This document shows positions 2,163-62,363 of a stretch of 64,000 bases of DNA, one piece after another (position 1 is the first letter of the stretch; every line of letters starts with the position of its first letter). The translations under genes and the position numbers were made by a program. The notes under the pieces are model-generated. The model had not been told where the DNA came from and made no database searches. It saw only the letters and a program-made list of their open reading frames with translations. The stretch spans positions 62,001-126,000 of IMG/VR virus record IMGVR_UViG_3300049460_000312; one strand, written 5' to 3'.

Positions 2163-3869
2163 TTAGCGGCGGCTGATGATATCGACGCGCTGCGCGAGAA
2201 GGGTAAAAAAAGTGTTCACCACATCGATCGGAATCAGGTGCGGGAAGCGGGGCAAACCCATTTCCTTGCCGCTGGTTTCCGGGATCGCAATCAGGGCACG
2301 CGTGGAGTCGTCCTTGAACTTGTTGATCGCTTCGTCCACCAGGCGGGTCGCTTCCTCATCCACCGACAGCACGTTGAGCACTTCCGCGATATCCTCACGG
2401 CTGGTGTTCTCGTTGCCTTCGATGATGATCGACTTGACCCAGGCGCCGTTGTTGCGCAGGCGCGAAGCCCGTGCGTGCGTCTCGATCATGCGGTTGCGTT
2501 CGGCTTCGTTAGGGGCGGCCTGCGTGAACGTCGAGTCCACGGTCTGCACGATACCCGCAATCCAGTGCTCGCCATCGGCGATGTAGTTGTCCACATCGGT
2601 CGAGGCCACGAGCACTTCCAGGCCCGGCTTGATTTCCACCCGACGACCGTTGGCGAGCGACGGAATGAACGTGGCCTGGTAGTCCTTCACCTGGTCCAAG
2701 GTCATCTTGCCGCGCTGACGGTTGGCCATGTGCGCCCGGTGCTTCGGCTCGAAACTGGCGTTGTCCACCCACATCAGCTTGCCCAGGTTGATCTTGGCGG
2801 AGACCGTTTGGGTATTCTCGATCCCTTCCTTGGTCACCAGCGAGCGCACGTAGTCGAAACCACGCGGCCAGATCAAACAAGCCAGGCCCCAGAACAGGAT
2901 GTTCAGATCCTGAATCTTGATCAGTGAACGCAACTCTTGATTGCTGTCCACCCGGACGCTATGCTCGTAGATGTGCTCGAAGCAGAAGTCGAGCAGCCAG
3001 CTGTTGATGTAGCTCTGCTCGTTGGAGAACACCAGGCCGAAGGTCTCGCGACCCAGCTCGATCTTCTCTTCCTGCAGACGGCGTTGCAGCTCGATGAGTG
3101 CCGACTCGGTCGGCGTGGTGAGCGTGATCCAGAAGCCCGAGTGCCACAGCGGAATCGAGACGATGCCGCCCAGTCCCATGATTGAGCGTACGCGCAGGAT
3201 ACCCTTCTCACCAGTGTAACCACCCGCGCCGGCTTCAGCGATCTTCGGGGCCGAGAAACCCAGCTTGCCCGATTCCGCTTCCAGATACTGCAGATAATTA
3301 CTGCCGTCGAAATTCACGGAAGCTTCAAAGCGACGGTCCACGTAGACACTGCGCGAAGCAGCCGCCACGATGGACTCGTTCCAGTCAGCGCCCTTGCCGG
3401 TACGCAGCGAGTTCGGCGACACAAACGCACGGATGCGCTCGTCCACCTTCTTGCCGCGCTCCGACAGGAAGAACATCACTTCGTTCTGGCCGTTCAGGTC
3501 CGTGCGCTCCGACAGAGGCACCGGTGTACTGGTGTAGTCCATCGTGAGTGTGACGCCCTTGTTCTCCGCCGGCCCGAGCGACAGGCCGTCGAAGTCGTTG
3601 TTCTCCGGCGCGCCTGGGGTGGCCAGGTTGATCGTACCACTGGTGGTCTGACCCACGAGCACCGGACGTTCTTTCTGGTCTTGCTGCGGCGCTGCGGCCG
3701 CAGCCGCAGACGTAGCCGGGGCTGCCGGAGCAACCGCCGCAGCAGCAGGCGCGACAGCCGCGGGGGCAGGCGCCCGTACGGGCGAGTTAATCGTCACCAC
3801 CGGATCTTGCGCCGGGAGTTGCGACGGATCGATCGCGGGCGGATTGCCTTGTTCGTTGTTCTCACTCAT
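2163..3869 (-). CDS. Large hypothetical protein, probably a conserved phiKZ-like structural protein
   Basis: 568-aa ORF with strong codon bias; a Pro/Ala-rich N-terminal linker precedes a globular region. No motif recognised. Confidence 0.6.
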   Translation of the reverse strand: MSENNEQGNPPAIDPSQLPAQDPVVTINSPVRAPAPAAVAPAAAAVAPAAPATSAAAAAAPQQDQKERPVLVGQTTSGTINLATPGAPENNDFDGLSLGPAENKGVTLTMDYTSTPVPLSERTDLNGQNEVMFFLSERGKKVDERIRAFVSPNSLRTGKGADWNESIVAAASRSVYVDRRFEASVNFDGSNYLQYLEAESGKLGFSAPKIAEAGAGGYTGEKGILRVRSIMGLGGIVSIPLWHSGFWITLTTPTESALIELQRRLQEEKIELGRETFGLVFSNEQSYINSWLLDFCFEHIYEHSVRVDSNQELRSLIKIQDLNILFWGLACLIWPRGFDYVRSLVTKEGIENTQTVSAKINLGKLMWVDNASFEPKHRAHMANRQRGKMTLDQVKDYQATFIPSLANGRRVEIKPGLEVLVASTDVDNYIADGEHWIAGIVQTVDSTFTQAAPNEAERNRMIETHARASRLRNNGAWVKSIIIEGNENTSREDIAEVLNVLSVDEEATRLVDEAINKFKDDSTRALIAIPETSGKEMGLPRFPHLIPIDVVNTFFTLLAQRVDIISRR

Positions 3870-21311: not shown

Positions 21312-23342
21312 TTAGTAGTTGCCGCGACCGCCAGCCCGCTTGTCCTCGTGATCTGCTACCTCACGCGGCATCAGGATGCCATCGAACGGATGGTTCGGTC
21401 GGTTACGCAAGGCAAACGACTCCGGTGCGTAAATCCCTTCCGCATGATGTTCGTAAGCCATAAACGGCGCCAACGAACGATACATGATGATGTTTCTCAG
21501 CACGCCCAGGCCGTTTTCCGTCCACGGCTTCGGCATCGAGTAATCGTAACGTTCAGCAGAACGGATCAACGCCCCACGCAACGTCACGGACACCACGGCG
21601 AGATTCACCCGGGCTTTCCGGTTCATCAGCTCCACCAGCTCCACGAGGGTCGAGGCAGGGTCGACCAGGCGGTCGCGCTCCACCACTTCCTTCACGGTCG
21701 ACTCCAGCACCTTCGCGATGTCACGCGAGTGGTCCGACATACTAAAGTCACGCATCGGCAACGACGCAAACGGTACATTCCACTTCCAGCCTTTCAGCGG
21801 AATCACGTAACAGCCCGTTTCCTCATCAACCGTATAATTCACGGCCTTGATGTGTTCCAGGAACTCGTACGTGAGAAAGGGCAGACGCTTGCCATCGCGC
21901 AGACTGATTTCCTCGCCATCGCCATTCGCTTGCCGGATCGTGACTTCCGAAAGCTCTGACATGCGCGATTCCATCAACACCCGCACGTTATCCACGTTGT
22001 AGATGTCCGACAGGTTCGGCGCAGCTTCACAGTCAAACAGCAGACTGAGATCGCCGTTCTTGCCGTTCTGCTTAAGCGTATCCGCAAACAGATAGCGATT
22101 GCCGTCGGTGGAGAGCTTGACGAACAACTGCGTGCGCGCATCGATCGAGGCGCCCTTGATGCTCTTGGACGAATCCAAGTGCTTCGTGGACAACACGCCC
22201 TGCGCGTTCTTTTCTGTCACGTGTGTGCAGTTCGCATGACCGATGTTGCTGTTGGACGGAATCAACTCGCTCATCAGCCCGTAACACGTCGAGCAGATGC
22301 CGTTTGGATCGGGCGACGCGCAGTACAGCACATTGCGCAGCTTGATGTTCTTGCCGATCAGGTACTTGTCATCGCGATGCACCGTCTTGAGCATGCCATC
22401 GTCATCGACGTAGTGGTTGCCGTCGAGGATTTCCAGATCGCTCGGCTTGTCCTCGTGCTTGCCCTGTACCCGCCAGTTAAGAAAGCGGGTCGTACCACAG
22501 TCGGTATGGTGAAGTGTTTCCACCCCCATGTCCATGGTGCGCAGCTTGCGCGAGAAATACTCCGTATCCTGCAGGTCGCCCTTGGAGGCATTCAAGGCCT
22601 TCGCTGCCGAGCGCGACTCGATCTGGATGTCCCGTTGTGAGCGGATACCCTGATAATAGCCGCGCATGATCGGAATGCCGAAGCGTTCGTTGTTGATGTC
22701 GGTCAAGAAACCCCGCGGGCCCAGACACTGATGGACCTGCTTGCTCGACACCAGTCCCGAGCGATACAGTTTCGACAATGCATTGTCACGCAGTTCCGGC
22801 TTGCGCTGCAACACCTGATCGATCGTGTAGTAGATGTCCGCAATCGACTCTTCGTCGGGTTTGGCCCGCTCGTACGACGCCACCACATCGGGGTCCTTGA
22901 ACACCGCGTGGAAGTCGAACAGATTCAGCGACGTGATATATGCGCCGAGATAGCGCACCATGTCGTTGTAATGCTGGTTCGAGATGTTGTACGCCAGCTC
23001 CGCCAGTTCAAAGCGCAGATCCACCATGCGCTCGACCGTATGGGTCGCGCTCAGATAATCCGCACAATCCCAGAGGATGTTCTGGATCAGCTTGATGTGC
23101 GTTTCCATGCCGAGCCGTCGCCCATTCAGGACCGCCGCGACATGATGCTTCTTCAGGATCGGTAGTCCCGGATAGTTCGCATGGAATTCCCAGAAATACC
23201 GGCTGTAGATGACCTCCTTGTGGTTGGTCAACAATTCCTCGCCGTCATCGAAGACGAGGATGAGGGGTCCGGCGAGCGAGCGCCAGGTATCCTCGATACT
23301 CAGGCCGAGAACGGTCCGAGCGGCAAGACGTTTTAGTGACAT
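21312..23342 (-). CDS. rpoC: Non-virion RNA polymerase beta' subunit, C-terminal part (phiKZ gp74-like)
   Basis: QCLGPRG, bridge-helix-like KGDLQDTEYFSRKL, DCGT...RNVLYC...GICSTCYG zinc site, trigger-loop-like NAQGVLSTKH. Confidence 0.9.
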   Translation of the reverse strand: MSLKRLAARTVLGLSIEDTWRSLAGPLILVFDDGEELLTNHKEVIYSRYFWEFHANYPGLPILKKHHVAAVLNGRRLGMETHIKLIQNILWDCADYLSATHTVERMVDLRFELAELAYNISNQHYNDMVRYLGAYITSLNLFDFHAVFKDPDVVASYERAKPDEESIADIYYTIDQVLQRKPELRDNALSKLYRSGLVSSKQVHQCLGPRGFLTDINNERFGIPIMRGYYQGIRSQRDIQIESRSAAKALNASKGDLQDTEYFSRKLRTMDMGVETLHHTDCGTTRFLNWRVQGKHEDKPSDLEILDGNHYVDDDGMLKTVHRDDKYLIGKNIKLRNVLYCASPDPNGICSTCYGLMSELIPSNSNIGHANCTHVTEKNAQGVLSTKHLDSSKSIKGASIDARTQLFVKLSTDGNRYLFADTLKQNGKNGDLSLLFDCEAAPNLSDIYNVDNVRVLMESRMSELSEVTIRQANGDGEEISLRDGKRLPFLTYEFLEHIKAVNYTVDEETGCYVIPLKGWKWNVPFASLPMRDFSMSDHSRDIAKVLESTVKEVVERDRLVDPASTLVELVELMNRKARVNLAVVSVTLRGALIRSAERYDYSMPKPWTENGLGVLRNIIMYRSLAPFMAYEHHAEGIYAPESFALRNRPNHPFDGILMPREVADHEDKRAGGRGNY

Positions 23343-23399: not shown

Positions 23400-25700
23400 T
23401 CACGCGACAAACGTGATTGCCGACGGCTTCGGCTCCAGTTCCTGGTACGGCGCATACGTAAACTTCCATCCGTTACAGAGAGCCAAGTGCTTCACCAGCT
23501 CCAACGGTTTCGCGTTCCCCAGCGGAATCTTGCTGCGATCCACGAGCATATCGATGTTGGTTGGCTTGTCGGCCCGCAGGATGTTGTACACGCCCATGCG
23601 GTGTGCGGCGATATTATTGTTGCGATCAATCAACTCCGCCATCGGACGCCACCCCATATACGAGGTGCCAATGGCAGTTTCCGTTTCACCCCAGGCCCGG
23701 ATCGCTTGCTGGCGCCACGGCGACGCATGCTTATCCTGGTTGTTGATGTGCGACAGAATGCCGAAGTTTTGCAGCTTGCCCGAGGACACCGAAGTCCAGT
23801 CATCACCGGTCTTCTCCAGCAGGATGAAGTACACCTCGCCGACGATGATCTTTTCCTGGGTGGTGACGAACTTGCCCGTATGGTCACGATACGTAATGTG
23901 ACCAATCTGTGGCATGAAGTGCTTCTGGATTTCGTCGACGACGTCAGGCAGCTCCGGATCGTTGTTGCTCGGATGGTAGATGTAGATGCCATCCTCCAGG
24001 AACGAGGTCATGTGTTCATGAATCAACCCCGCTGCGGCTTCGCGCTCATAGAACTCAGCCTGCTCCGGACTCACGGTGCGCATGAAGTGCATGAAGCGAT
24101 CCCAGGCGGCCACGGCTGCCGGTTCCTGCTTCTTGTAAGCAATCTCCACCCGTGTTTTCTCCGCGAGACTGAGCTTCTGACCGTGCACGCCGGGATACTG
24201 CACTCCAAACAAGTTACAGAACTCCTTGTTCAGATCCCGGCCTGCTGCGTTAAAGCCCTGCTCGTAGAGACGACCCAGATTCTGCCGTGACACGGTAGCA
24301 CCGCCGTCCATCGCGATATGCGCGCGATTGCCGAACTCGTCCACCGGCATGTCTTCCTTCGGCACAATCTTCACCACCACGCCCTTACCACCCCAGCAGT
24401 CGGTGATCTTGTAGCCTTCCGTCGGTGTCGCTTCATACTCGACCACGAACTCGATGGTAAAGTCATCCATCGGGGAGGCCCGGTAGATCATCTGCACACG
24501 CTGTTCTTCGTTGATGGCTTCCTGTTGCGTCACCGCATACGCATGCTTGAGCAGGTTCTTGAAGTTGTGCGAGACCTTGTAACGGCCTTTAGGCTTATTC
24601 GCCTTCATCACGTTCGACTGACGCAGCACTTCGCGATAAAACACGCGTGCGGCCTGGTCGTACTTCAATGCCTGATCGTTACAGATGCTCGGCGCAAACG
24701 GTGCCCGGGATGCATCATGGCTCACGCGAATGTCGATCACCCGACCGCGGCTCATCACCTGACCGGTTTCCCGATCGGTTTTGGCCGACGGCACATACGT
24801 GAGCTTGTCGAACACGTAGTTCACTTCGCGAGAAGCTGTAGTCGACATTTCCACCGCCGAGTAGACATCGCTGTAACTGCGCAACGCCATCAGCAGGCCA
24901 TCGGGTCGGACATAATCGCCAATGTCCGGGAACGGCTTATAAATCGTTTCGTCCCCGTACAGGTTCAGCGGGAAGTGCGTCGAGCCATATGCCACCGTGC
25001 GCTTTTCATACTTGTGAATCTTCAGCCACGGTACTGCCTCGTCCGAGAGCAAGACACCGTCCTCAGCCACTTCCGGGAAGCTGCCAAAGACGACATTCAA
25101 GTTAATACCGTAACAGTAATTGCCATCCGGGCGTTTGGACGGCGAATCCTGCAAGATGGTATCGGCGGGCAGCATCGAGCCGCGTGAACCCGGCGTGGGC
25201 TGACGCAGCTGGCGAGCCTTTTCGGTATTCTTCAGCGGGAAGCCGAAATACTGGTGGTTGGAGAAATACTCCCGCATCGAAATACAGTCGACTTCACTTT
25301 CCCTGCCCGGCCCTTCATCCGGGTATTCGACAATCAGCATCGTTTCAGGGTTGTGGCGAATTGCATCCGTGCCCACGACTCTGGTGTTATAAAACGGGAT
25401 CATGGCCAAGATCTCGCAGTCACGTTCGACTTTCGTCGAGAACGTGGCTTTACCGTACTGGATCTCGGCCCCGGTTTGAATCCGTCGCGGTGTGGACTTC
25501 TCGAATACCAGGCACTGGGAAGTGTGGCTGGCGCCGAACATCTGCTTACGTGAAGCGGAGACTGTGCCGTCAAACGGCGACAAGCTCATCACGTTAGCCA
25601 ACTCGGGATAGAGTTGATTCGGCTCGTAGTGATAGTTCCAGACCGACGAAAGCGCTTGGGTCAGTGTGGTGTTACTGACACTTGTGTTGTCCTCTGCCAT
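23400..25700 (-). CDS. rpoB: Non-virion RNA polymerase beta subunit, C-terminal part (phiKZ gp71-73-like, uninterrupted)
   Basis: SRKQM, EDGVLLS, GYKITDCWGGKGVV (equivalent to GDK...HGNKG), RQNLGRLYE, YFILLEK and AWGETE (equivalent to RFGEME). Confidence 0.92.
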   Translation of the reverse strand: MAEDNTSVSNTTLTQALSSVWNYHYEPNQLYPELANVMSLSPFDGTVSASRKQMFGASHTSQCLVFEKSTPRRIQTGAEIQYGKATFSTKVERDCEILAMIPFYNTRVVGTDAIRHNPETMLIVEYPDEGPGRESEVDCISMREYFSNHQYFGFPLKNTEKARQLRQPTPGSRGSMLPADTILQDSPSKRPDGNYCYGINLNVVFGSFPEVAEDGVLLSDEAVPWLKIHKYEKRTVAYGSTHFPLNLYGDETIYKPFPDIGDYVRPDGLLMALRSYSDVYSAVEMSTTASREVNYVFDKLTYVPSAKTDRETGQVMSRGRVIDIRVSHDASRAPFAPSICNDQALKYDQAARVFYREVLRQSNVMKANKPKGRYKVSHNFKNLLKHAYAVTQQEAINEEQRVQMIYRASPMDDFTIEFVVEYEATPTEGYKITDCWGGKGVVVKIVPKEDMPVDEFGNRAHIAMDGGATVSRQNLGRLYEQGFNAAGRDLNKEFCNLFGVQYPGVHGQKLSLAEKTRVEIAYKKQEPAAVAAWDRFMHFMRTVSPEQAEFYEREAAAGLIHEHMTSFLEDGIYIYHPSNNDPELPDVVDEIQKHFMPQIGHITYRDHTGKFVTTQEKIIVGEVYFILLEKTGDDWTSVSSGKLQNFGILSHINNQDKHASPWRQQAIRAWGETETAIGTSYMGWRPMAELIDRNNNIAAHRMGVYNILRADKPTNIDMLVDRSKIPLGNAKPLELVKHLALCNGWKFTYAPYQELEPKPSAITFVA

Positions 25701-26324: not shown

Positions 26325-28112
26325 TCAACGTCCGTTGAAGAAACCACGCGAGGCAAACTGATTCTGCTGTGCGGTTTCCACGGCGCTGCGCAGATAACGC
26401 GGCACGGTGGTTTGACGTTGCATCTGCTGCTGTTGCATTTGCGCCGCGCCGGCGACATGCATTTGCGACAGATAGTTCTGGAACATCACCGGGTTGCCGC
26501 GATACATCTGGATTTCAGCCTCGCTCAAACCCGGGATCTGTGCCGGATCGGTGATCGCCTGCACGGGCATGCCCATGCGCGGCGCCATCGGATTGAACGG
26601 CTGACCCATCGGCACCATGCCCGGTGCAGCTTGTGCCTGGTTGAGCGGGATGTAGACCTTACCATCGATCAGCATCGCGTTCGGCGGCATGGTGCTGACG
26701 CCTTGTGCTTCGACCGGGATATACAGCTGGCCGTTGAACAGACGTGCGCTTTCCGGCACTTTCATCGCTACCGGTTGCTGTTGCACCATCTGCTGCTGCA
26801 TCGGCACCATGCCGGCCTGCATCCCCGGCAACACGTTACCCGGCATGCCCATTTGCTGCTGGGGCGGTTGCTGAGCAGCCAGCAACGAACCCACCGGCGG
26901 CGTCACGGGTACGTGCGCGGTGAGCGGCGGTTGGTGATACGACAAACCCGCCACTTGTTTGGCCTGCTGGTCAGTGATGTGGTGAGTGGTGTGCTCGACG
27001 GTCGGGGCAGACACGCCCAGTTTGAATCGCGGCTTCACGGCATGGCCCTCGTGTTGAGCAGGTTGTTGTTGTTGGACAGCCGATACGCTGACTGCTTGTG
27101 CCGTGCTGACCGGCGTTTGCACCATCGACGCCGAGATCATCGGGGCGACATCAGCGCCCACGACCGTACGCGCCATCGGCGAATCGCTGATCTTCACCGG
27201 TGCATGCGCTTGGGCGATCCGCTCGGTCGGCGCATTACCTTCGAGCAGCGGAATCTTGCGGATTTCCGGCAACAGTGGCGTCAGATCGACGAAATCATCC
27301 CGCCAGTCGTTGACTATCAGCAAGGCATTCGCTGTATTGATCACCGGTTCCAGAATCGACACCGCCTGGTTCTGCACTTCCGTATAACGGCCGTACAAAG
27401 CCATCAGCGCTTCCAGCGACGGAGCAATCTTCGAGTCCGAACCGACTTCGTAGAAACCCGGCTCACGAATTCCGGTGAACAGGAACTCGTACATGTTGCG
27501 CAGCATCTTGACGTCAGCGATGCGCAGCTTGTGACCGGCGATTTCCGTCGGCTTGTTGTCTTTCGGCAACAGTTCGTACAGCGGGAAGTGACACACAGCC
27601 ACGCGCGAGCGTTTCTGACCCTGCCACACGCGTCCCTTGATAACCGAGAAGCGGATGAATTCCGCATTCTTCTTCGACACGCGCTTGGTGCCCACCAGAT
27701 CCGTGAGCAGCTTGACAAACTTCGCATCCGAATCCGAGAACGGGCCGAGATACGCAGCCTGTTCCGGTGTCAGGTCCTTGTGCATGTCCTTCTTGATGCC
27801 GAGTTGCGCGATGTCCACGAGCAACATGCCGAGCATGAAGTCGGCGTACGCGTTCATGCGCTCACGGAACTTCTCCAGCACACGCGACTCGCCACCCGCG
27901 ACGTTTTGCAGCAGCGGATGGAAACCGATACGGCTCGACCAGTCGGGTTGCTTCAGTTGCGTGTCAGTCGGCAACACCACCCGCTTGGAATCGACCAGCA
28001 GCGGCTTGGGGGTATCGCCACCGGGCAGGATCGTCGAGACGAATCCTTCGCTATCGGAGACCATGCCGACGCTTGCCTGAATACTCTTATACAGTTCGAT
28101 GAGGGTTTTCAT
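26325..28112 (-). CDS. Chimallivirus core protein (phiKZ gp70 position) with a Q/M/P-rich disordered C-terminus
   Basis: Lies between the PicA-like gene and nvRNAP beta; low-complexity tail. Confidence 0.6.
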   Translation of the reverse strand: MKTLIELYKSIQASVGMVSDSEGFVSTILPGGDTPKPLLVDSKRVVLPTDTQLKQPDWSSRIGFHPLLQNVAGGESRVLEKFRERMNAYADFMLGMLLVDIAQLGIKKDMHKDLTPEQAAYLGPFSDSDAKFVKLLTDLVGTKRVSKKNAEFIRFSVIKGRVWQGQKRSRVAVCHFPLYELLPKDNKPTEIAGHKLRIADVKMLRNMYEFLFTGIREPGFYEVGSDSKIAPSLEALMALYGRYTEVQNQAVSILEPVINTANALLIVNDWRDDFVDLTPLLPEIRKIPLLEGNAPTERIAQAHAPVKISDSPMARTVVGADVAPMISASMVQTPVSTAQAVSVSAVQQQQPAQHEGHAVKPRFKLGVSAPTVEHTTHHITDQQAKQVAGLSYHQPPLTAHVPVTPPVGSLLAAQQPPQQQMGMPGNVLPGMQAGMVPMQQQMVQQQPVAMKVPESARLFNGQLYIPVEAQGVSTMPPNAMLIDGKVYIPLNQAQAAPGMVPMGQPFNPMAPRMGMPVQAITDPAQIPGLSEAEIQMYRGNPVMFQNYLSQMHVAGAAQMQQQQMQRQTTVPRYLRSAVETAQQNQFASRGFFNGR

Positions 28113-37512: not shown

Positions 37513-39042
37513 TCAGTGCATTTGTGCTCTGGGTGGTGGTGCGTCGGGTAATGCGTTCATACGCTCCAGAGCCGCCTGATCAAGTTCTTCATCCGTGGTT
37601 TCCATCCAGTTGGATGTCGTACCCACCACCGTCTTGGAATGCTCCAATGCCGACGAGATGGCCCGAATGTTGTCCAGACTAAACGAGTTCTTGTACGGTG
37701 CCAGATTCTTCAGTGCATTCGCAATGTAGCCATCCAGTGCGAGCGTGAACTGGAGTGCATCACCGTCAAAGTCGCAGTTAAGCGGCCTGACGATCAGAAT
37801 CGACATCGAAACCGTTTGTCCCTCGTCCGGCGCTTTCACGCGGGCGATGAACACAGCCTGAATAGAACCCCGCTTCAGTGACGGAGGACGGTTCAGCGTC
37901 GCGGCGATGCCACGCGAGTCCGGGGACTCTTCGATCATCTCCTTGAAGAGATAATCCATCAACGGATGGTACGTGGTAGCGTAGCGATGCAGGAAGTCCT
38001 GCGCCTCGTTTGGCGTGAATCCCAACTTGTACAGCTTGTTGGTCAAATGCAGCTGGAACACCGAAGTGGCCACACCCCACGGGATATAAATCTGCTCGTG
38101 ATGATGCGGTTCAGTGATGGAGGCCACCACCGCCCGGAAGCTGAAGTGACTCCGCGTTGCGAACACGTGCTTCCGGAAGATCCCTTCCTTCTTCGCGAGT
38201 CGCTTACTGCACACGTAGTAGTAATACTCGGCGAGACGCGCAACTGCCCGCACCGCACGAGATTCCCGCAACCGCAAGCTCGTGGTGAGCTCGCCCTTTG
38301 ACGAAGGTGTATCGATGCCCGCCAGCGTGAGCACCGCATTGATCGCTTTCGGCGTGAATTCGTCGAGATACACGCCGCCTGAGGTGCCATCTTCCACCAC
38401 CAACAGCGAACGGTGGGGAATCGGCAGATGCGACGAGAACAAGCAGTCCGGATTCTCGTCCAGCATCTTGCGCAGGAAGTCGGTCGTGACGCGACCCTTG
38501 ACCCGCGATTTGAAGATATTCAGCGAAAACAGGAACTCTTTGATCCCGTTCGGACCATTCCAGTTCTCGATGAAGTGATTCAGTCCACGCTCAAACGGCA
38601 ACTGGTCCGTGATCGGCGTGAACTTGCCCACCTGATTCTCAGGAACGCGATATTGCGTATCCGTAAGATATTGAATCAGGTTAAAAGAGCCAATACTGAA
38701 GCGCTCGCTCAGCATCGTCCAGACGATCGGGTTGATCAGTCCGTGAACGCCTGCTGGGGCGCGAATCCATGTAACCGTCTCCAGTTCTTCCGCAACGACT
38801 TCTCGCACTTCGTCATGGCAGAAGGGGCACGTAGTCCCTAGTCGAAATTCCCCTTTGCTTTTCCCGCATGTGCACGAGGGCACATTCGAGAGCATGTCCG
38901 GTGTATGGCGCGTGTAGATCGTCTTGTGGATCAACTCCATGTTCTGCTCGGTAAATGCGGGCAGATCATTGACGATTACAGGCTCGACGGACAGGGTGCT
39001 GTGGACGTGATTAAAGTCCACGAGGCTCTGGTGAATACCCAT
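37513..39042 (-). CDS. rpoC: Non-virion RNA polymerase beta' subunit, N-terminal catalytic part (phiKZ gp55-56.1-like, uninterrupted)
   Basis: CTCG...CPFC zinc site, KEGIFRKHVFATRSHFSFRAV, LNRPPSL and the catalytic NCDFDGD motif. Confidence 0.93.
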   Translation of the reverse strand: MGIHQSLVDFNHVHSTLSVEPVIVNDLPAFTEQNMELIHKTIYTRHTPDMLSNVPSCTCGKSKGEFRLGTTCPFCHDEVREVVAEELETVTWIRAPAGVHGLINPIVWTMLSERFSIGSFNLIQYLTDTQYRVPENQVGKFTPITDQLPFERGLNHFIENWNGPNGIKEFLFSLNIFKSRVKGRVTTDFLRKMLDENPDCLFSSHLPIPHRSLLVVEDGTSGGVYLDEFTPKAINAVLTLAGIDTPSSKGELTTSLRLRESRAVRAVARLAEYYYYVCSKRLAKKEGIFRKHVFATRSHFSFRAVVASITEPHHHEQIYIPWGVATSVFQLHLTNKLYKLGFTPNEAQDFLHRYATTYHPLMDYLFKEMIEESPDSRGIAATLNRPPSLKRGSIQAVFIARVKAPDEGQTVSMSILIVRPLNCDFDGDALQFTLALDGYIANALKNLAPYKNSFSLDNIRAISSALEHSKTVVGTTSNWMETTDEELDQAALERMNALPDAPPPRAQMH

Positions 39043-39150: not shown

Positions 39151-41265
39151 TTAGTAGTTGCCTGCACCACCCGTGTTGGTGGCACGCTGATGCGCGTAGC
39201 GGCCGAACGAGCCCGCTGCCACACCTGCGGCTGCATTGCGACGCATGCCCGACGGCACGAACGAACCAGCCGTGCCGAGGTTCGTCGGCAGGTTGCGCAT
39301 GTACGGAGCAACCATACGTGCGGTGCCCTGCGGAGCCGAGACGCCGACCTTCGTTTCGTACACGATACCTGCTTCCGCAACTGCTGCGGCGATAGCGTAG
39401 ATGAACGTCGGGTTGAACGTCACGCGAACCGAGCGACCGGTGATGGTCATCGATTCGAACAGGCCTTGCTGGATACGACGCGTTTCGGTCAGACGGAACA
39501 TCGGATCGACTTCTGCGTTGGCCTGCAGGTTCGACCAGTCGTTGATGGTTTCCAGCTCGCTGTCGCCCGTGGCGTTCAGCACGCAGAGGTAGTCGCCGTC
39601 GCGGATGTCGCGCTTGCCGCCTTGTGCGAAGTAGAAACCGTTGTTCACGTACATGTTGTCGTTGAACACCGGAGCCTTCATCACACCGCCGTTGGCCGCC
39701 TTGTAGATCGGCGAGAACTTGCCGCCCGTCAGCAGGTCTGCTGCGTCGAACAGGTCCTTGATCGCGTTCTGGTCACCGCGTGCAGCTGCGGCGAACACGC
39801 CCGTGATCCAGCTCGACGGACCGCTTTCCGGCACGTCCATGGAGATGAGCAGCGGTTCCAGATGGAAGTACGTCTGGATGACAGCGGCGAGCGCTGCATC
39901 GTTGACGTTCGCGCTGTTCAGCGGCAGACGGCCAGCCTTCGGCAGTTCGCCACCCATGTAGCCCATCGGCATTTGCTGCGGTGCTTCCAGACCGATTGCC
40001 GACAGGTCGCGGATGTTCATGCCGCCTTCCTGATGGCTCGCGCCGTTCTTGTGCTGCTGGATCAACGCGCCGATCCAACGGTTGTCGTTGTACAGCGCTT
40101 GCGTGGTCGCGAGACCTTGCAGGATCACCGGCAGTTCGCACACGTCGTCCGGTGCATCGATGTTCGTGATGACCAGGCGCGGCGTGTAGATCTTCAGCTG
40201 ATCCGGCGTTTGCGCCATGTTGCCCATACCGCCGAACTGCGCAGGCGACGAAGCCGTCGACGGCGTCGAGGTCAGGTCGATGTAGCCGAGCAGCTGCGTG
40301 AGCAACGTCTTCGCTTGCGACGTGTTGTACTGGAACTCACCGGTGTTCTGGTTGTTCTGCTGCTTGCCCGTCAGCATCGACATTTCCAGCACGACGTCGC
40401 CGCGTACCGGCTGGCCGTTCAAGTCGACGAAGTGACCCCAGCTCGACTTGATTTCGTTCTGGAACGTCTGTTGCGCCATTTCCGGCGTGATCGTCCAGCT
40501 GTCTTCTGCGACCATCGTGGCGAGCATCACCGACGTTGCCGTCGTCGCGTTGGCGATGACGTTACGCACCGCTTCTTCCGAACGCAGGTCCAGATCCGCC
40601 GGCACGACGTTCGATTCTGCGTCGATCAGCGTGTAGCCGCGGTAGTTGTCCGAGATGATCTGCACGACACGGGCGCGCAGCGTTGCGTCGTACGCGTCAG
40701 CCGGGACGACCAGGCGTTCGTACTTGATGCCGTTGCCGAACTGCGCTTCGACAGCGGTCTGACCGCGGGCGGTTTGCGCGAGCAACAGCGTGTGGTAGGC
40801 GACGTACTTTTCGCCGGCGTTTTCCTGGCCCTTCAGGACCGCTGCGACGACCAGTGCCGAGATGAGCAGGCCTTCCTTTTCACCGTCGAGCGCGAAGAAC
40901 GCGAACTTGACGGGCTGGTCGACTTCACCTTCGGCGATCTTGTCGGTGACTTCGACGATGGCGCGCATGGCTTGCGAAGTGGCCGCGCGCGAGATGCCGT
41001 AGTTTTGACGGGTGGAGATCATGGAACGGGTTCCTTGCGATTGAGTATTGTTGGTGGTTTGATGCGAAGCTTGCTGGGTTTGCGGTGCGGCACCCTGCGT
41101 GCCGGTGTTGCTAGCAGCGGCTGCGGCGGCGGCGAAGGTATTCTTCTTGCCCGGCGCCTGCGGCGGCTGCTTGTTCGGTTCGGAAGGCGTCGAAGCCGAC
41201 GTGTCGGCAGCCTTTTCACCATTGTTGTTTCCGTCGCTACCGTTGTCGTCGACTTGGATGGCCAT
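39151..41265 (-). CDS. chmA: Chimallin, major nuclear shell protein (phiKZ gp54-like)
   Basis: 704 aa with very strong codon bias, a disordered N-terminus and an extended C-terminal tail. It lies immediately upstream of nvRNAP beta'-N and downstream of the DNA polymerase, the conserved chimallin locus. Confidence 0.78.
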   Translation of the reverse strand: MAIQVDDNGSDGNNNGEKAADTSASTPSEPNKQPPQAPGKKNTFAAAAAAASNTGTQGAAPQTQQASHQTTNNTQSQGTRSMISTRQNYGISRAATSQAMRAIVEVTDKIAEGEVDQPVKFAFFALDGEKEGLLISALVVAAVLKGQENAGEKYVAYHTLLLAQTARGQTAVEAQFGNGIKYERLVVPADAYDATLRARVVQIISDNYRGYTLIDAESNVVPADLDLRSEEAVRNVIANATTATSVMLATMVAEDSWTITPEMAQQTFQNEIKSSWGHFVDLNGQPVRGDVVLEMSMLTGKQQNNQNTGEFQYNTSQAKTLLTQLLGYIDLTSTPSTASSPAQFGGMGNMAQTPDQLKIYTPRLVITNIDAPDDVCELPVILQGLATTQALYNDNRWIGALIQQHKNGASHQEGGMNIRDLSAIGLEAPQQMPMGYMGGELPKAGRLPLNSANVNDAALAAVIQTYFHLEPLLISMDVPESGPSSWITGVFAAAARGDQNAIKDLFDAADLLTGGKFSPIYKAANGGVMKAPVFNDNMYVNNGFYFAQGGKRDIRDGDYLCVLNATGDSELETINDWSNLQANAEVDPMFRLTETRRIQQGLFESMTITGRSVRVTFNPTFIYAIAAAVAEAGIVYETKVGVSAPQGTARMVAPYMRNLPTNLGTAGSFVPSGMRRNAAAGVAAGSFGRYAHQRATNTGGAGNY

Positions 41266-46557: not shown

Positions 46558-48381
46558 TCAGAGCGAGGCGATCGACTGGTCCACGTACTTGAACACCGAG
46601 TACATCACGTCATGGGCTCGGTCTTCGATCCGCGAGAAAATCGTGGCGGACGTGTCTTCGTGCGCGTAGATCATGCCGATGGCGTTGCGCTGTTCTTCGC
46701 TCATCATGTCCCACAGATGGCGGACCGGACGATCCCACTCGAACCAGGCATCGACTTCGCCGAGTTCTTCGTCATTGAGCGCGCCTTTGAGCATCGGGAA
46801 ACTGACGTCGACGTCGATATACTCGAACAGCACGGTGAGGATGTCTTGCAGCTGCTTGACATCCCGAGCCTTACCCACGGCAACCGGAATCGGCTTGAGA
46901 TCGTAATCGATGTCCAGGTGCGCGTGGCCGCGAAAGTCCACCTGCTTCGGATGCACGGGGTTACCACCGATCCAGCCGTCGTACTTGCTCGCTTCCTTTT
47001 CCATGAAGGCTACGAAACCATTGCTGTCACGTACCCGTTCTGCATTGGCGACCAACGGCTTCATCGCTTCGTCCAGTACCTCCTGGGGCAGGTTGCCTTC
47101 GCGATCCATGGCACCTACCACCGTGCGTTCGAACTTCTGCACCAGCGGGCCAGCAAGACGTGCATAAGCCTTGACATTCTTGGCCATGCGCTCGTTCACA
47201 GCCGAGGCTTCCTTGAACATCTTGGCAAGCGCCGGAGCGATCTCTTCCGGCCGCGGACCCTGCCCGTTGATCGAGAGCTTCAGTTTATCGCCGGGCGTGA
47301 ACGATTTACTTGTCAACTGGAACTGGCTCGGATCAGCCAGGAACTTGCTGCAGCGCTTCCAGGCCGACTGGATGTCGAAGCGCTCGATCGGCTGTGCCGT
47401 CGGACCCGTCTTCACTTTGCTACGGAAGTAATCCATCAGGCCTTCGGTCGCCGGCTGCTTCGTGATCAACGTCTTGTCGAACATGGCGATATACAAGCCG
47501 CTCATGATCGGCGCAAGCTCGTACTCGATGAAGCTGGCGAGATCGCTGACGTTATTATCGTCCTGGCTGGAAAAGAGACTGCGGAAGATGTCATCGCCGT
47601 GTTTGAGATTGTCGTACTCGATCTCATCGGCCACACTATCCCAATAGGGAATGTAGTTCTCGTCACGAATCTTGTCTGCTTCGAGCGCCACAGCCATCAG
47701 AGCGCGCAGTGCATCGGCAAAAGCCTTGGCGTTGTGCTGGTTCGGCGCTTCGAGCTCGCCCGTGGTTTTCACCCGACCATAGGTGGTAAAGGAGAAATCC
47801 TTCGGGTCGGCAAAATTGATCGGGAAGGTGCACGAGCGGTCATCACACCCGAACGCCGGAGCCGGCCGTTTGAACGCCTTGCGAGCACGATCCACCGGTG
47901 ACTCATTGAGTTCTTTAGCGTGAGCTTCCCAGAACTTGTCGAGCTCGCCATTGTTCTTGATCCCTTCAGCTTGCTTACACAGCCGCTTGCGCAGCTCCGT
48001 ATGCGGCTTCTCAGTATGCGCAATCGTCTTCACGGTCGCGAGCATCTCGCCAGCGACCTTGGCGATCGCTTGCGGATTGGTGAGGGCCTTGCCGAACACG
48101 TTGGCCTGTGTCAGCCCGGCCACGTGAATCGTTTCCTGAGCTTCACCGAGGTTCTTCTTCACCCAGTCCGGATTGTCGTAGGTGCTGCGCAAGTCGCCTT
48201 CCAGATCACGGGAGAGCTTTTGCGCTGCATTCCAACTGTCCTTATGCAACAGCTCGGCGCGGGCCTGCTGCTTGCTCTTTTTTGCAAAAAGCTTTTTGAT
48301 CGTGTCGACAAACCCTTCGCACGCGGGTCCGTACTCGCCGAAGTCGCGTGCGTGTTCGTCTTGCAGTTGGAGGATCTTCAT
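46558..48381 (-). CDS. Putative internal head/ejection protein with two protease-site-led domains
   Basis: ACE|GFVDTIKKLF near the N-terminus and ATE|GLMDYFRSK mid-protein fit the S/A/G-x-E prohead-protease pattern of phiKZ-like head proteins. Confidence 0.5.
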   Translation of the reverse strand: MKILQLQDEHARDFGEYGPACEGFVDTIKKLFAKKSKQQARAELLHKDSWNAAQKLSRDLEGDLRSTYDNPDWVKKNLGEAQETIHVAGLTQANVFGKALTNPQAIAKVAGEMLATVKTIAHTEKPHTELRKRLCKQAEGIKNNGELDKFWEAHAKELNESPVDRARKAFKRPAPAFGCDDRSCTFPINFADPKDFSFTTYGRVKTTGELEAPNQHNAKAFADALRALMAVALEADKIRDENYIPYWDSVADEIEYDNLKHGDDIFRSLFSSQDDNNVSDLASFIEYELAPIMSGLYIAMFDKTLITKQPATEGLMDYFRSKVKTGPTAQPIERFDIQSAWKRCSKFLADPSQFQLTSKSFTPGDKLKLSINGQGPRPEEIAPALAKMFKEASAVNERMAKNVKAYARLAGPLVQKFERTVVGAMDREGNLPQEVLDEAMKPLVANAERVRDSNGFVAFMEKEASKYDGWIGGNPVHPKQVDFRGHAHLDIDYDLKPIPVAVGKARDVKQLQDILTVLFEYIDVDVSFPMLKGALNDEELGEVDAWFEWDRPVRHLWDMMSEEQRNAIGMIYAHEDTSATIFSRIEDRAHDVMYSVFKYVDQSIASL

Positions 48382-52935: not shown

Positions 52936-53958
52936 TTACTCCGCGAGGAACCCACCAACCAGCTGTTCATCACCGTCGAGCACCTCGCTCTGGGTGGTGT
53001 AAGCGGCTGCCGCCTTTTCCATGTCGGCCAGGATACCCTTAAGCCGCGCCGAGATATCGTTGAACGGATAGGCTTTCGTCACCAGGTGCAGCGGTGCACG
53101 TTCCGTGACTTCCTTTTCAATGGCCGACGGCATCACGCCGTAGCAGGTGTAGGGAATCACGAAGTCGATGCCACGCGCATCCTTGTTCACGACAGCGGAC
53201 GCGACCGTGATCGTGTCCTTGTGCTCTTCCGCGTCGAGCTTGCCGACGAACGTCTGCAGGCCAGCTGCATGCGTCTTGAACGCCGTCATGCGATCGAAGT
53301 TCAGGAAGTTGTACATGTCGCGGGTGTCGAGCCCTTCGTTCTGACGCGAGAACAGCACGGAGAGCGCCACCACCAGATCGTTGATCTCCGTATCGACTTC
53401 CGAGGGCGGAGTGTCCTTGTTGTTCTCGAAGTACGCGACGGCGATCGACTTCTTGTTCGCCGCGACCAGGCCTTCGAACGTCTTGAACGTCGCGAGCGTG
53501 TTCTTGATCTCGGTGCCCGAGTCCAGCACGCCAACCGTGATCGCGACCACCAGCTCGTCCTGCGCGAGCAGTTCATTGATGACGGCTGCTGCCATCGGCG
53601 CACCCGTGCCGCCCGAGGCCGACGAGAGCACAACGTTCAGGTAACCCGGCTTGTGCTTTTGCAGCATGTCCTTCGCGTGCTTGAGCATCGCCGCCGACAG
53701 GTGCTTGCGCTCCTTGCCTGCGCCGTCCGGTTCCTTGCCCGACGCATCGGTCTTCGGCAGCTTGTAGATCTTGTCCTGTGGCAGGCTCGGCTTCAGGTTC
53801 GAGTTCGACGAATCGAAGTAGACGACATCGATCGTGGCCATGCCCGCTTCGACGTGGCTGCGGTAGTTCTCGAAGTTCGAGCCGATATTGATCCCTGCGC
53901 CACCGCAGGCATACAGCTTGATCGTGCCCAGCTCCGGTGCTTGTGCTTGTTGTTCCAT
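52936..53958 (-). CDS. phuZ: PhuZ/TubZ tubulin-like spindle GTPase
   Basis: IKLYACGGAGINIG, FDSSNSN, GAGKER, the tubulin signature SASGGTGA and a D-DM loop. Confidence 0.93.
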   Translation of the reverse strand: MEQQAQAPELGTIKLYACGGAGINIGSNFENYRSHVEAGMATIDVVYFDSSNSNLKPSLPQDKIYKLPKTDASGKEPDGAGKERKHLSAAMLKHAKDMLQKHKPGYLNVVLSSASGGTGAPMAAAVINELLAQDELVVAITVGVLDSGTEIKNTLATFKTFEGLVAANKKSIAVAYFENNKDTPPSEVDTEINDLVVALSVLFSRQNEGLDTRDMYNFLNFDRMTAFKTHAAGLQTFVGKLDAEEHKDTITVASAVVNKDARGIDFVIPYTCYGVMPSAIEKEVTERAPLHLVTKAYPFNDISARLKGILADMEKAAAAYTTQSEVLDGDEQLVGGFLAE

Positions 53959-54044
53959 GATCCTTCCCTTTAATGCGTGGTTATAAAAAAAGAAAAAGTG
54001 CCCGACTGTTCTCGTACACACAAGAAAAGGTCGGGCTGTAAAAC

Positions 54045-54254
54045 TTAATCATCCCAGTTCTGGTTGTCAGCCAGTTCCTGAGCCCACGATGCAATCGCAG
54101 CGCGCTGGATTGCGGACAGCGTTGACCAGATTAGCTGAACCTGACTGGGAACTTCCCAACGCCAGTCATGAACCTTGTGGGCTTCACTCCAGGCCGGATC
54201 ATGATAGTCGCTGGGTACAGCGCAGGGGTTGCCCCGGGCGTTGTGGATTTCCAT
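54045..54254 (-). CDS. Small hypothetical protein
   Basis: 69-aa Trp-rich ORF between two core genes. Confidence 0.55.
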   Translation of the reverse strand: MEIHNARGNPCAVPSDYHDPAWSEAHKVHDWRWEVPSQVQLIWSTLSAIQRAAIASWAQELADNQNWDD

Positions 54255-54255
54255 C

Positions 54256-55137
54256 TCAGGGCTTCAGCGCGAAGGTTTCATCCTTGGCGCTGTCTTCGTC
54301 ATCCTTGATCACCGTCACCTTGACACCTTTCGTACCGTCAGCGTTGGTAATCATCAGCGGACCATCTGCAGGAACGACTTCGTTGATGTCCGGGAACTTC
54401 TTGTACTTGATTTCGTCACCGTAGAGATTCAGCGGATAACGACCCGGTTCACCGAACTCGATCGGAGTACGGATCATGCTTTCGCCACCGATGACGAGAC
54501 CGTCTTCCGTAATCATCGGCTTGTCTGCCATGATGACCGCGAGATCGGTGCCGTAACGATAACCTCCGGCTGGCACCCGCTCGATCGACTCGTCGACAGC
54601 CTTCTGCATGTCTTCCGGACGGATCACCAACCCCTTCGACTCTGCATCGAAGCTGACTGCAACGGACGAGGCGGGTTTGGAGAAGTCGACCACACCACCC
54701 AGGGCAGGGAAGTAGGCTTCACCGTGATGCTGGCTCAGATCCAGAAACTCGTGGGTCGCCATCATCTCGACATTGGCGGGGGTGTGTTCGTGGCCGAGAT
54801 CAGCCCGCTCGGGAATATTCGTTTCCGGATCGACTTTCGGCAGGTTGTCACCGAACAGGGCCTGCAATGCATCGGCCCCTTCCTGGACCACCGGCTGCGC
54901 AGTCGCCGCTTCCGTGTACACGGTACGCTGCTGGTCGATCATCGCCTGCTTGTGTTTGTTGACCAGCTTGAAGTGGGCTTCGCGACGGTCCTGTTCGCGC
55001 TGCACTTTGGCGCGATTCTTCATCAAACGCTTCTGCACACCCTTGTTGCGGAACTTGGCGTGCGTGATGCCGGCAGCGACAGCCTCGTCGACTTGACCCT
55101 TGGTGATCTTGGTGTTCAGCAGTTTAGCTTGGCTCAT
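54256..55137 (-). CDS. Hypothetical protein carrying an RNAP-beta-derived segment near its C-terminus
   Basis: Basic N-terminus. YPLNLYGDEIKYKKFPDINEVVPADGPLM matches FPLNLYGDETIYKPFPDIGDYVRPDGLLM in the nvRNAP beta of this window. AAAAAGGA RBS. Confidence 0.75.
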   Translation of the reverse strand: MSQAKLLNTKITKGQVDEAVAAGITHAKFRNKGVQKRLMKNRAKVQREQDRREAHFKLVNKHKQAMIDQQRTVYTEAATAQPVVQEGADALQALFGDNLPKVDPETNIPERADLGHEHTPANVEMMATHEFLDLSQHHGEAYFPALGGVVDFSKPASSVAVSFDAESKGLVIRPEDMQKAVDESIERVPAGGYRYGTDLAVIMADKPMITEDGLVIGGESMIRTPIEFGEPGRYPLNLYGDEIKYKKFPDINEVVPADGPLMITNADGTKGVKVTVIKDDEDSAKDETFALKP

Positions 55138-55219
55138 GATACTTTCCTTTTTGTGGTGTAAAGGGGATTGGCGATATAATTGCGCCATACTGTAGAAAAC
55201 AACTCACGTTGCACTAGTT

Positions 55220-55245: not shown

Positions 55246-55508
55246 GCTTTGAATTGAGCAATGGTTTTCGCTTGAGCGTCGTGAACTTATCTCACGGCTG
55301 GTTACCAAAGTGTTGCCTCGATGGCACGTCTAACTTTTGGTTTTATGAAACTCACACACCCTCCGCCTATGGCTACCGTGCGTGAGTGAACCGGTTATCT
55401 GAAAGAAGTGATTGCCGAGCGGGTTCGGTCTCCTCGGAATCGCAATCTCCTTTCCTTCTCTGACCTGTTTGCTCGCCACGAGCACTACAACGCGAAAAGA
55501 GATTGAAC

Positions 55509-56318
55509 ATGAATGCCCTTCGCAAAGCGCTGGACGAAATCAAATTCGTTATTCCGCGCTCGGTCCTTGAGACTGTCTTTATCAAGCGCCACTCGAACTA
55601 CCGAGTGGCTCAGGCACCGACGAGCTTGGATGACCAAGTTCTGAATGCCGTAATCCGTCCGCGCGTCTTTATCGACACCAACCTGGTGGGTGGTGCGGAA
55701 ATCCTGGTTTCTCTGGAAGGTCTGGACGGCGACGAAGTCAACACCACGGATATGGTGTACCGCATTCCGAAGAACCGTACCCAGAACCGCTCCATCATGA
55801 GCGTGCTCAACGTGACCTACGTGGATGCACAATCGATGGCGGCCGCTGGTCAGTACGCCTCCTGCGGCGTGTCTGCTGAGCAAAGTGCAGCCCAGCAGCT
55901 GCTCGATGCGGTATCACCCCTGCCACTGATCTCGACCGGCCGCATCACGTTGATCGGTGAGAACGTGGTGCTGATCCGTGACTCGATCCGCATTCCGTCG
56001 AACAGCTACCTGCGGTGTATCGTCGCGCACGATGAGGCGATGAGCCACATCCAGCCGCGTAGCTACAAGGCCTTCTGCAAGCTGGTGGAGTACGCCGTCA
56101 AGTCCTACATCTACAACGAGTACATCGTTGAACTGGATATGGGCGAGCTGCGTGGGGGTCACAATCTCGGCAAGTTCAAGGACATCATCGAAGGTTACTC
56201 GGACGCCGAGGAACTCTACGAGACGTACCTCGCTGAGAAGTGGGCCAAGATCAGTTTCCAGAATGATCGGGAAGGCATGAACCGGTGGATGAAGCTGCTC
56301 ATCGGTGGTCCGCGCTAA
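55509..56318 (+). CDS. Conserved-type chimallivirus protein (probably virion structural)
   Basis: About 269-aa ORF with strong codon bias, ending at a bidirectional hairpin. Confidence 0.7.
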   Translation: MNALRKALDEIKFVIPRSVLETVFIKRHSNYRVAQAPTSLDDQVLNAVIRPRVFIDTNLVGGAEILVSLEGLDGDEVNTTDMVYRIPKNRTQNRSIMSVLNVTYVDAQSMAAAGQYASCGVSAEQSAAQQLLDAVSPLPLISTGRITLIGENVVLIRDSIRIPSNSYLRCIVAHDEAMSHIQPRSYKAFCKLVEYAVKSYIYNEYIVELDMGELRGGHNLGKFKDIIEGYSDAEELYETYLAEKWAKISFQNDREGMNRWMKLLIGGPR

Positions 56319-61751: not shown

Positions 61752-62363
61752 ATGAAGAGCTTCATGTCTGCTGCATTGCAGAATACCGAACCAACCAAGA
61801 GCATCAAGCCCGCTGCAGAATGCAGCGACTGCGGTAACACCAAAGCCACGGCCACGGCTGGTGGTCTGGAATCCACCGAACAACAAGCGCCGGCTACTGA
61901 CAAACCTGCAGCCCCGCAACAGGAGAGCGCCGTCGTGGTTATGCAAGGACCGTTGGGCACCGCAATCACGGAAGCCCTGAACAAGTCACTCTCGAAGAAG
62001 AACCTCTCCGAGCCGGTGCAAGTCCCGGGGGTGGCGACCGAGTCGCTCACGACCGAGTATGTGCAAGCGAACGGTCAAATCAACAACCCGACCCAGCTCT
62101 TCGCCAAGATCAGCAAGGCCGTCGGGCTGGTGCCCGCTGTCGACGAGAAGCCTACCGCGATCAACACCATGCTCGACGCTGCAAGCAAAGTGGACGACAT
62201 CGACTTCATCATGGTCGAACACGTGGACGACGCTAACCCGTCGGCATCCGTCGTTCCGCAAAAAAGCACGATGCAGATCATGACCCCGGGTCAGGCCGCA
62301 TGCGAAAGCATCGCGATCGAGTCGGTGCAGATGGTGGTCACGTATCGCCGCCTGAAGGGATAA
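61752..62363 (+). CDS. Putative head-associated protein with multiple x-x-E processing sites
   Basis: GLE, ATE, ACE and AIE motifs in a 203-aa Ala/Thr/Glu-rich protein. Confidence 0.55.
   Translation: MKSFMSAALQNTEPTKSIKPAAECSDCGNTKATATAGGLESTEQQAPATDKPAAPQQESAVVVMQGPLGTAITEALNKSLSKKNLSEPVQVPGVATESLTTEYVQANGQINNPTQLFAKISKAVGLVPAVDEKPTAINTMLDAASKVDDIDFIMVEHVDDANPSASVVPQKSTMQIMTPGQAACESIAIESVQMVVTYRRLKG

Follow-up and report, generated by a model that had tools for sequence, protein, structure and literature searches.

Nucleus-forming jumbo phages encode a non-virion RNA polymerase (nvRNAP) made of split subunits, in which the C-terminal half of beta is represented by phiKZ gp71-73 (PDB 7ogp and 8que, chain C). 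Regulators such as sigma region 4, T4 gp33 and AsiA, and possibly gp68 in the case of nvRNAP, act through the SBHM/flap domain of beta (PMC7824862). Jumbo-phage nvRNAPs are, however, reported to lack the flap-tip helix that sigma factors bind, and gp68 lies along the flank of gp71-73 (PMC12809450). Import of nvRNAP in phiKZ depends on subunit-subunit contacts and on Imp7 (gp166), a small, poorly conserved and clade-restricted helper (bioRxiv 10.64898/2026.09.21.753271), while the DNA polymerase of Chimalliviridae is a split three-subunit enzyme (PMC13648698). Viruses also use molecular mimicry by short motifs and decoy or sponge proteins, for example the DNA mimic Ocr and nucleotide sponges like Tad1. 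Finally, genes for RNAP beta and beta', DNA polymerase, RNR and TerL are the classic hosts of introns, inteins and homing endonucleases, which can leave exon remnants. Here we describe a phage gene, called X in the following, that carries short copies of motifs of the phage's own core enzymes and compare it with these systems.

The window is a stretch of 64,000 nucleotides (positions 62,001 to 126,000 of IMG/VR record IMGVR_UViG_3300049460_000312) and comes from a 283-kb nucleus-forming jumbo phage with direct terminal repeats, related to Ralstonia phages FLC4-3B, FLC1-1B, RP12 and RP31. The first-pass annotation had pointed out that 29 codons of the gene upstream of PhuZ match the nvRNAP beta gene at 19 of 29 residues without gaps. 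This observation is confirmed, with coordinates and residues as given, and it turned out to be understated: X is not a one-off duplication but belongs to a family of jumbo-phage proteins. The interpretation, that an otherwise unrelated protein had captured an RNAP surface and could act as a mimic or decoy competing for gp68, a host anti-phage sensor or the PicA import-recognition site, is only partly supported; a beta-derived segment does sit in an otherwise unrelated protein with a basic N-terminus. Features of the locus are collected in the table. The start of X is most likely M18 of the 310-aa ORF, in agreement with the orthologues and with the database entry for this protein, P0001 (P numbers designate family members throughout).

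Features of the window discussed in the text; coordinates are positions in the window
Feature	Coordinates	Strand	Remarks
Gene X	54256..55137	-	293 aa plus stop (P0001); phrog_36316 family; start at 55137
Basic N-terminal domain	54853..55137	-	residues 1 to about 95; small hairpin and helix, then one long helix (residues 32-95), as predicted
Beta-like segment	54352..54597	-	P0001 residues 181-262; 'ED' strand of the beta barrel plus start of the flap/SBHM (PLNLYGD..YK.FPDI)
The 29 codons of the first-pass annotation	54352..54438	-	core of the LNLYGD bead; Y251-M279 of the 310-aa ORF, matching beta F243-M271 (24888-24974)
GxKGV bead	54298..54363	-	P0001 residues 259-280; copy of the beta active-site lysine motif region
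Acidic C-terminal tail	54259..54297	-	ends in FALKP
nvRNAP beta C-half gene	23400..25700	-	phiKZ gp71-73 homologue; PDB 7ogp_C E=2e-114; phrog_3295 E=2e-237
Beta residues 183-271	24888..25154	-	counterpart of the beta-like segment
Beta residues 429-448	24357..24416	-	GGKGV motif; counterpart of the second bead
gp74 homologue	21312..23342		beta' C-half
gp55 homologue	37513..39042		beta' N-half
DUF7484 gene	55503..56318	+	phrog_3179; chimallivirus core gene; divergent neighbour on one side of the locus
PhuZ tubulin gene	52936..53958	-	downstream neighbour on the other side; start taken at the MEQQ methionine (listed ORF 52936..54021); phrog_4733 E=2e-94

The similarity between X and beta is far beyond chance and about three times longer than first reported. 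BLASTP against the phage's own beta gives an 89-residue alignment at 38% identity (E=7e-15), and an HMM built from 24 nvRNAP beta sequences hits X at E=2e-22. In the whole 283-kb genome the only other match to this part of X is the nvRNAP beta gene; the virion polymerase does not match. A second, collinear match follows directly: '...ITNADGTKGVKVTVIKDDED' of X corresponds to '...ITDCWGGKGVVVKIVPKED' of the beta GGKGV motif. The beta C-part HMM detects this bead at E=0.004, and a motif HMM built from family instances, X's own among them, finds the beta motif at E=6e-8. The protein thus reads like the beta barrel with the flap body deleted. At the DNA level the 12-mer GTTCCCGGACAT is present in both genes, as had been noted, but the flanks are not near-identical as claimed: nucleotide identity in the block is 61/90, only 15 of 30 third positions agree and dS is about 1.2. 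For X against the phage's own beta dS is given as 1.2-1.6 and, more broadly, as 1.2-3. This is what an old copy conserved at the protein level would show. Synonymous sites are saturated, so the copy has survived a long time while keeping the beta-conserved residues.

X is not a beta subunit in the catalytic sense. No Pfam match was found for X, or for its C-terminal part at E up to 10, and a PDB sequence search with X returned only phiKZ gp71-73, weakly. The phrog_3295 match (E=3e-6) covers 74 of 293 residues, and the rest of X has no similarity to beta. Both halves of the double-psi barrel and the two catalytic lysines are required for a complete barrel, whereas the first lysine position is M in X and the protein ends before the last barrel strands. 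Beta residues 150-320 could not be mapped onto Pfam Rpb2_6 (PF00562) either, as no match was found; the correspondence with E. coli RpoB therefore rests on the structural superposition described below and on background knowledge of RNA polymerase.

An exhaustive search of 1.84 billion representative proteins found two groups of hits, namely jumbo-phage beta subunits, matching at residues about 180-265, and 37 clusters at 50% identity that share the N-terminal 70 residues, so that the family comprises at least 37 such clusters. A word-indexed protein search, limited in length and words, had given only two hits, and a scan of IMG/VR with the family alignment gave only RP12. The shared N-terminal domain is phrog_36316, so far annotated as of unknown function, with the pattern KITKxQ.D.A.AAG.THAKF.NKGVQKRL.KNQ; it matches the window protein at E=1e-25 and is present in all 34 aligned members. 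The beta HMM hits about 25 of the 37 members, with E down to 1e-25, and 17 of 34 members hit the PHROG beta families. The gene order is constant in all 12 phages and contigs examined, i.e. the window, four Ralstonia phage isolates and seven independent metagenome contigs (7 contigs and 5 isolates in another count): a divergent DUF7484 gene, X, zero to two small ORFs and PhuZ. RSL2, FLC9 and phiKZ-like phages have the flanking genes but no X at this locus. A scan for sigma-70-type promoters and terminators around the gene was uninformative.

Both ends of the protein are conserved. AlphaFold models the N-domain confidently (pLDDT above 90 over residues 10-90), with its long helix being basic. 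Searches of the ESM Atlas and, with Foldseek, of BFVD returned only long-helix look-alikes and the RP31 orthologue for this domain. The acidic C-terminal tail, which in the window protein ends in DETFALKP, is common but not universal: the terminal motif [ST]F[SAGM]L[KPNE][PASD], also written in the narrower form [ST]F[SA]L[KP][PA], occurs in 14 of 39 members. The idea that the tail mimics the chimallin tail was rejected, because the ChmA termini show no similarity. Two conserved ends explain why everything between them must stay in frame.

Between the ends, the largely unstructured and variable middle carries short conserved beads that copy invariant motifs of core enzymes: four or five motifs of nvRNAP beta, motifs of both beta' halves and a motif of DNA polymerase. 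The window protein has three beads, all from the beta C-half: the ED barrel strand, the start of the flap/SBHM (LNLYGD) and GxKGV. Among relatives, the beta fork motif (..NPF..SRKQMF.., beta residues 25-56) is found in 13 members, and the family-built HMM finds beta at E=5e-9 with the next best hit at 0.6. GGKGV is found in 6 members and the FGILS..WGETE region of the beta C-half in one (E=6e-5). RPDHxFDPLL, from the C-terminus of the gp74 homologue, occurs in 9 members (E=2e-4). AHSTLT..CR, from DNA polymerase residues about 164-190, occurs in 5-8 members (E=4e-9, with three independent tblastn hits at about 1e-3). Three gp55 motifs in P0011, P0009, P0036 and P0010 are mostly weak, the strongest being that of P0011 (tblastn E=1.5e-4). 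P0018 has a TerL piece (phrog_2, E=3e-7) and P0029 a piece of the RNR large subunit (phrog_84, E=2e-5; PF02867, E=1e-4). It is important to note that detection is biased towards conserved motifs, because only these stay recognisable across distant phages, that some regular expressions used to collect motif instances were written after the target had been seen, which makes the reciprocal E-values partly circular, and that the non-beta pieces rest on one to a few members each (the TerL, RNR and beta C-terminal pieces on single members). Bead order differs between members: P0041 has fork and then LNLYGD, P0017 LNLYGD and then fork, P0007 GGKGV and then LNLYGD, and FLC4-3B has ED, LNLYGD, DNA polymerase, RPDH and GSKGV.

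The first-pass annotation had named two outcomes that would refute it, a segment unique to this genome and decaying, or one belonging to a generic domain unrelated to RNAP function, and these conditions do not hold. The segment is found in other genomes, and the 29-codon block is under purifying selection: among three X copies (window, FLC4-3B and P0004) pN is 0.29-0.32 against pS 0.48-0.81, with Fisher p of 0.007, 0.09 and 0.0002. Between the window phage and FLC4-3B (dS about 1) dN/dS is 0.24 for this block, 0.22 for the N-domain and 0.05 for beta itself, but 0.76, close to neutral, for the upstream ED block. Among 12 members the mean identity is 60% over a 52-residue stretch of the N-domain, 44% in the LNLYGD module and 22% in the linkers between the N-domain and the module, while real beta sequences show the same 44% to each other over this segment. 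A 29-codon capture by this phage is not supported, since the module is old and family-wide. In a 65-column tree 12 of 16 X modules form one clade (91/78, inner node 100/89), the window's module and three others are unresolved among the beta sequences, and none joins its own phage's beta clade (99/98). A single origin of all X modules is not rejected (AU p=0.07).

Turnover of the beads is fast, even between near-identical phages. FLC1-1B differs from FLC4-3B by a clean in-frame 192-nt indel that removes the whole beta-like segment, and by module replacements further on. RP12 and RP31 lack all of the window's beads except an ED remnant (..VGEDGV..) in proteins of 171 and 159 aa. A relative that is 80% identical over the first ~104 residues has a complete 150-aa protein with only a fork bead. 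The segment is dispensable in nature.

In the window's own protein the bead region is shorter and is modelled with pLDDT below 50; it may be truncated past the point of folding. In P0009, whose module is longer, residues 170-255 reach pLDDT 86-95 without any beta sequence in the alignment, and the best PDB matches of Foldseek are phiKZ and AR9 nvRNAP beta (E=7e-4 and 3e-3). Residues 175-260 of this model superpose on gp71-73 residues 201-285 (Z 5.9, rmsd 4.3 A, 32% identity), and a weaker, high-rmsd (about 13 A) superposition on bacterial RpoB begins at about residue 834. The earlier placing of the segment at the base of the flap, i.e. at the start of the flap (SBHM) domain inserted in the beta double-psi barrel, is supported by this predicted structure of one family member. 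An explanation tied only to the flap or to gp68 is nevertheless too narrow, because relatives carry copies from beta', DNA polymerase, TerL and RNR.

Our analysis establishes the homology, the family, its fixed locus, the modular and permuted architecture, selection on the beads and their rapid turnover, whereas any function of the beads, binding included, is inferred. Our best guess, which remains tentative, is self-mimicry by a lineage-specific, fast-evolving accessory protein. In this view the beads are displayed on a flexible chain as competitive binding sites for whatever recognises these invariant elements in the real enzymes. This could be a host or rival-phage factor that targets them, which would make X a decoy or sponge, or the partner subunits themselves, which would make X a holdase, an import hitch-hiker or a dominant-negative against a co-infecting relative. 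The N-domain and the C-tail would anchor or localise the protein. A complex prediction of X residues 170-293 with the gp55 homologue scored 0 and is not counted as evidence either way. Rapid gain, loss and reshuffling of beads fits a conflict-driven accessory function rather than a housekeeping one, although the dispensability of the segment, the near-neutral ED block and the low-confidence model of the window's bead region speak against this reading. We cannot exclude a still bolder possibility, unlikely on present evidence, that X-family proteins soak up a host defence factor or a rival phage's weapon directed at exactly the unmutable active-site-cleft motifs of the RNA and DNA polymerases (and sometimes TerL or RNR). 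Reshuffling of beads would then be the footprint of that arms race, and the bead repertoire a map of the elements under attack.

Two other explanations are less likely and about equally so. The first is a neutral mosaic, in which a disordered linker tolerates insertions and pieces of other phage genes land there by illegitimate recombination or as filler during double-strand-break repair, perhaps at homing-endonuclease cut sites in conserved genes, and persist only while in frame, without function of their own. Frequent clean in-frame indels and module swaps between near-identical phages, absence of the bead in viable relatives, the ED block, the low-confidence model and the identity of the source genes agree with this. 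The phiKZ group I intron splits beta inside the GGKGV motif, HGGK|GV (gp71 ends at residue 394), which may explain how fragments arise, but not why they are maintained. This reading is weakened by the conserved-island pattern, by recurrence of the same beads in 13-25 members, by the old clade of 12 modules, by pN below pS in the 29-codon block and by the long survival of beta-conserved residues. The second is an assembly or import helper, in which the beads would bind complementary surfaces of orphan nvRNAP or DNA-polymerase subunits and X would shield these surfaces, or ride with them into the phage nucleus, as a clade-specific accessory factor comparable to Imp7. The beads come mainly from three of the four beta/beta' nvRNAP pieces and from DNA polymerase, both of which are split enzymes in these phages, and the work on nvRNAP import and on the split DNA polymerase gives context but no direct link. 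However, a housekeeping helper should not lose and reshuffle its binding elements between sister phages, many chimalliviruses (RSL2, FLC9, phiKZ) have no X at this locus, and the TerL and RNR pieces do not fit. A decaying paralogue of the beta C-half fused to an unrelated N-terminal domain is improbable, because, although the significant beta pieces are collinear with beta in most members (for example P0009, P0011, P0012, P0041, P0026 and the window protein) and P0009 keeps a module predicted to fold, followed by a weaker match further along beta, bead order is permuted in P0007, P0029, P0013, P0017, P0020 and P0027, beads from gp55, gp74, DNA polymerase, TerL and RNR are interleaved with the beta beads, and the beads are kept under selection rather than decaying. 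A DNA-level role as recombination donor or antisense was rejected as well, because nucleotide identity to beta is only about 60-68% with saturated synonymous sites, and JADA/Avs5 (phiKZ gp124) was found to be unrelated.

Full-text literature searches and the main comparative study of jumbo phages (PMC7824862) contain no description that we could find of this family or its architecture, or of a phage protein built as a string of selectively maintained copies of its own core enzymes' invariant motifs; what was known is phrog_36316 as a family of unknown function, which now gains a defined architecture and a set of testable predictions. If the beads are functional mimics, some unknown factor, be it a host defence, a rival phage's weapon or the assembly and import machinery, must recognise invariant elements of the nvRNAP and DNA polymerase of nucleus-forming phages, and the bead repertoire offers a handle to fish it out. 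If they are not functional, the locus would still be an unusually clear record of how gene fragments are captured, kept in frame and shuffled in a phage genome.

Compared with the nvRNAP beta C-half, the window's beads are homologous to two parts of the subunit, and the P0009 module is predicted to adopt the same local fold as the corresponding part of gp71-73, but X has no complete double-psi barrel, no Rpb2_6 match and no flap body, lacks about 80% of beta and cannot be a polymerase subunit in the catalytic sense. With Imp7 it shares being a small, poorly conserved, lineage-specific accessory protein, functionally tied to the nvRNAP in the case of Imp7; there is no sequence relation, Imp7 is not described as built of polymerase motif copies, and a link of X to import is only a hypothesis. 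Flap-binding regulators act through the domain from whose base the main bead derives, but X copies the flap base rather than binding it, and most other beads have nothing to do with the flap. Like mimics and decoys such as Ocr and Tad1, X has conserved short elements in a flexible, fast-evolving protein that resemble a binding surface found elsewhere, yet here the copied elements come from the virus's own enzymes, not the host's, and mimicry is inferred from sequence without a known target. Exon remnants of mobile introns, inteins and homing endonucleases involve the same set of source genes, and the GGKGV bead coincides with the phiKZ intron insertion site. We rejected the idea that X is a homing-endonuclease or intein remnant, since no nuclease or Hint domain (LAGLIDADG, GIY-YIG, HNH or intein blocks) was matched in Pfam or PHROG in any of the 34 members, and the beads span the known insertion site instead of ending at it. 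The beads are conserved at the protein level, not the DNA level.

Between gene X and PhuZ lies an ORF of 69 aa that matches phrog_9546, 'RecX-like filament modulator' (E=8e-12). This ORF is absent from the corresponding position in FLC4-3B, FLC1-1B, RP12 and RP31, where X and PhuZ are only about 86 bp apart. A filament modulator next to a tubulin gene may be worth attention. It is important to note that long ORFs also run antisense to real genes in the window, for example a 310-aa mirror ORF opposite gene X and a 743-aa one opposite ChmA. Such ORFs are what G+C-rich coding DNA produces and are not evidence of genes. Positions of the features considered here are collected in the table.

Positions of additional features in the window and in related sequences
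Feature	Sequence	Position	Strand
69-aa ORF between gene X and PhuZ	window	54045-54254	minus
Chimallin (ChmA) homologue	window	39151-41265	minus
nvRNAP gp74 homologue	window	21312-23342	minus
Interrupted beta gene (gp71, group I intron with gp72)	phiKZ, NC_004629 (L026)	63275-66595	
gp15 (gene X)	FLC4-3B (L001)	2643-3596	
gp15 (gene X)	FLC1-1B (L002)	2643-3578	
595-aa protein, phrog_29213	window	26325-28112	minus
607-aa protein, phrog_28669	window	46558-48381	minus
310-aa mirror ORF opposite gene X (and similar)	window	54229-55161	plus
X-family member P0009, model		residues 1-73	

Comparison of gene X in FLC4-3B and FLC1-1B (gp15 in both) shows that these two closely related isolates differ by a clean in-frame 192-nt indel that removes the whole beta-like segment, by a replaced middle section, and by a 75-nt insertion near the 3' end. 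The indel junctions share a short TTCG. In phiKZ, gp71 is 394 aa long, so the group I intron, which carries gp72, interrupts the beta gene inside the HGGK|GV active-site motif. Note that this motif is one of those copied in the X family.

Regarding other possible sources of the beads, we noticed that a protein of unknown function encoded near the DNA polymerase (607 aa, phrog_28669) shares a short motif (NP..Q.D.RGHA.LDID) with the X-family members P0014 and P0015, and more weakly with P0013. It may be another bead source, although the E-values are only 0.3-2. The protein encoded just upstream of the nvRNAP beta gene (595 aa, phrog_29213), also of unknown function, has a long Q/P/M-rich low-complexity C-terminal half. 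By position alone it could correspond to a phiKZ gene in the region upstream of gp71, which holds the import factor gp69/PicA and the nvRNAP subunit gp68. The chimallin homologue and the nvRNAP gp74 homologue both end in a glycine-rich tail, finishing in ...GGAGNY and ...GGRGNY, respectively. We cannot exclude a possibility that this similarity is due to chance, but it may also be a shared C-terminal signal.

A Foldseek search with the predicted structure of P0009 gave a very weak match (E=4.9, aligned range not reported) between some part of the model and the DNA-binding domain of the pSK1 Par partition protein. Given the position of gene X next to PhuZ, this match is a lead only. Par has a DNA-binding head, a coiled coil and a disordered tail, as X may have.
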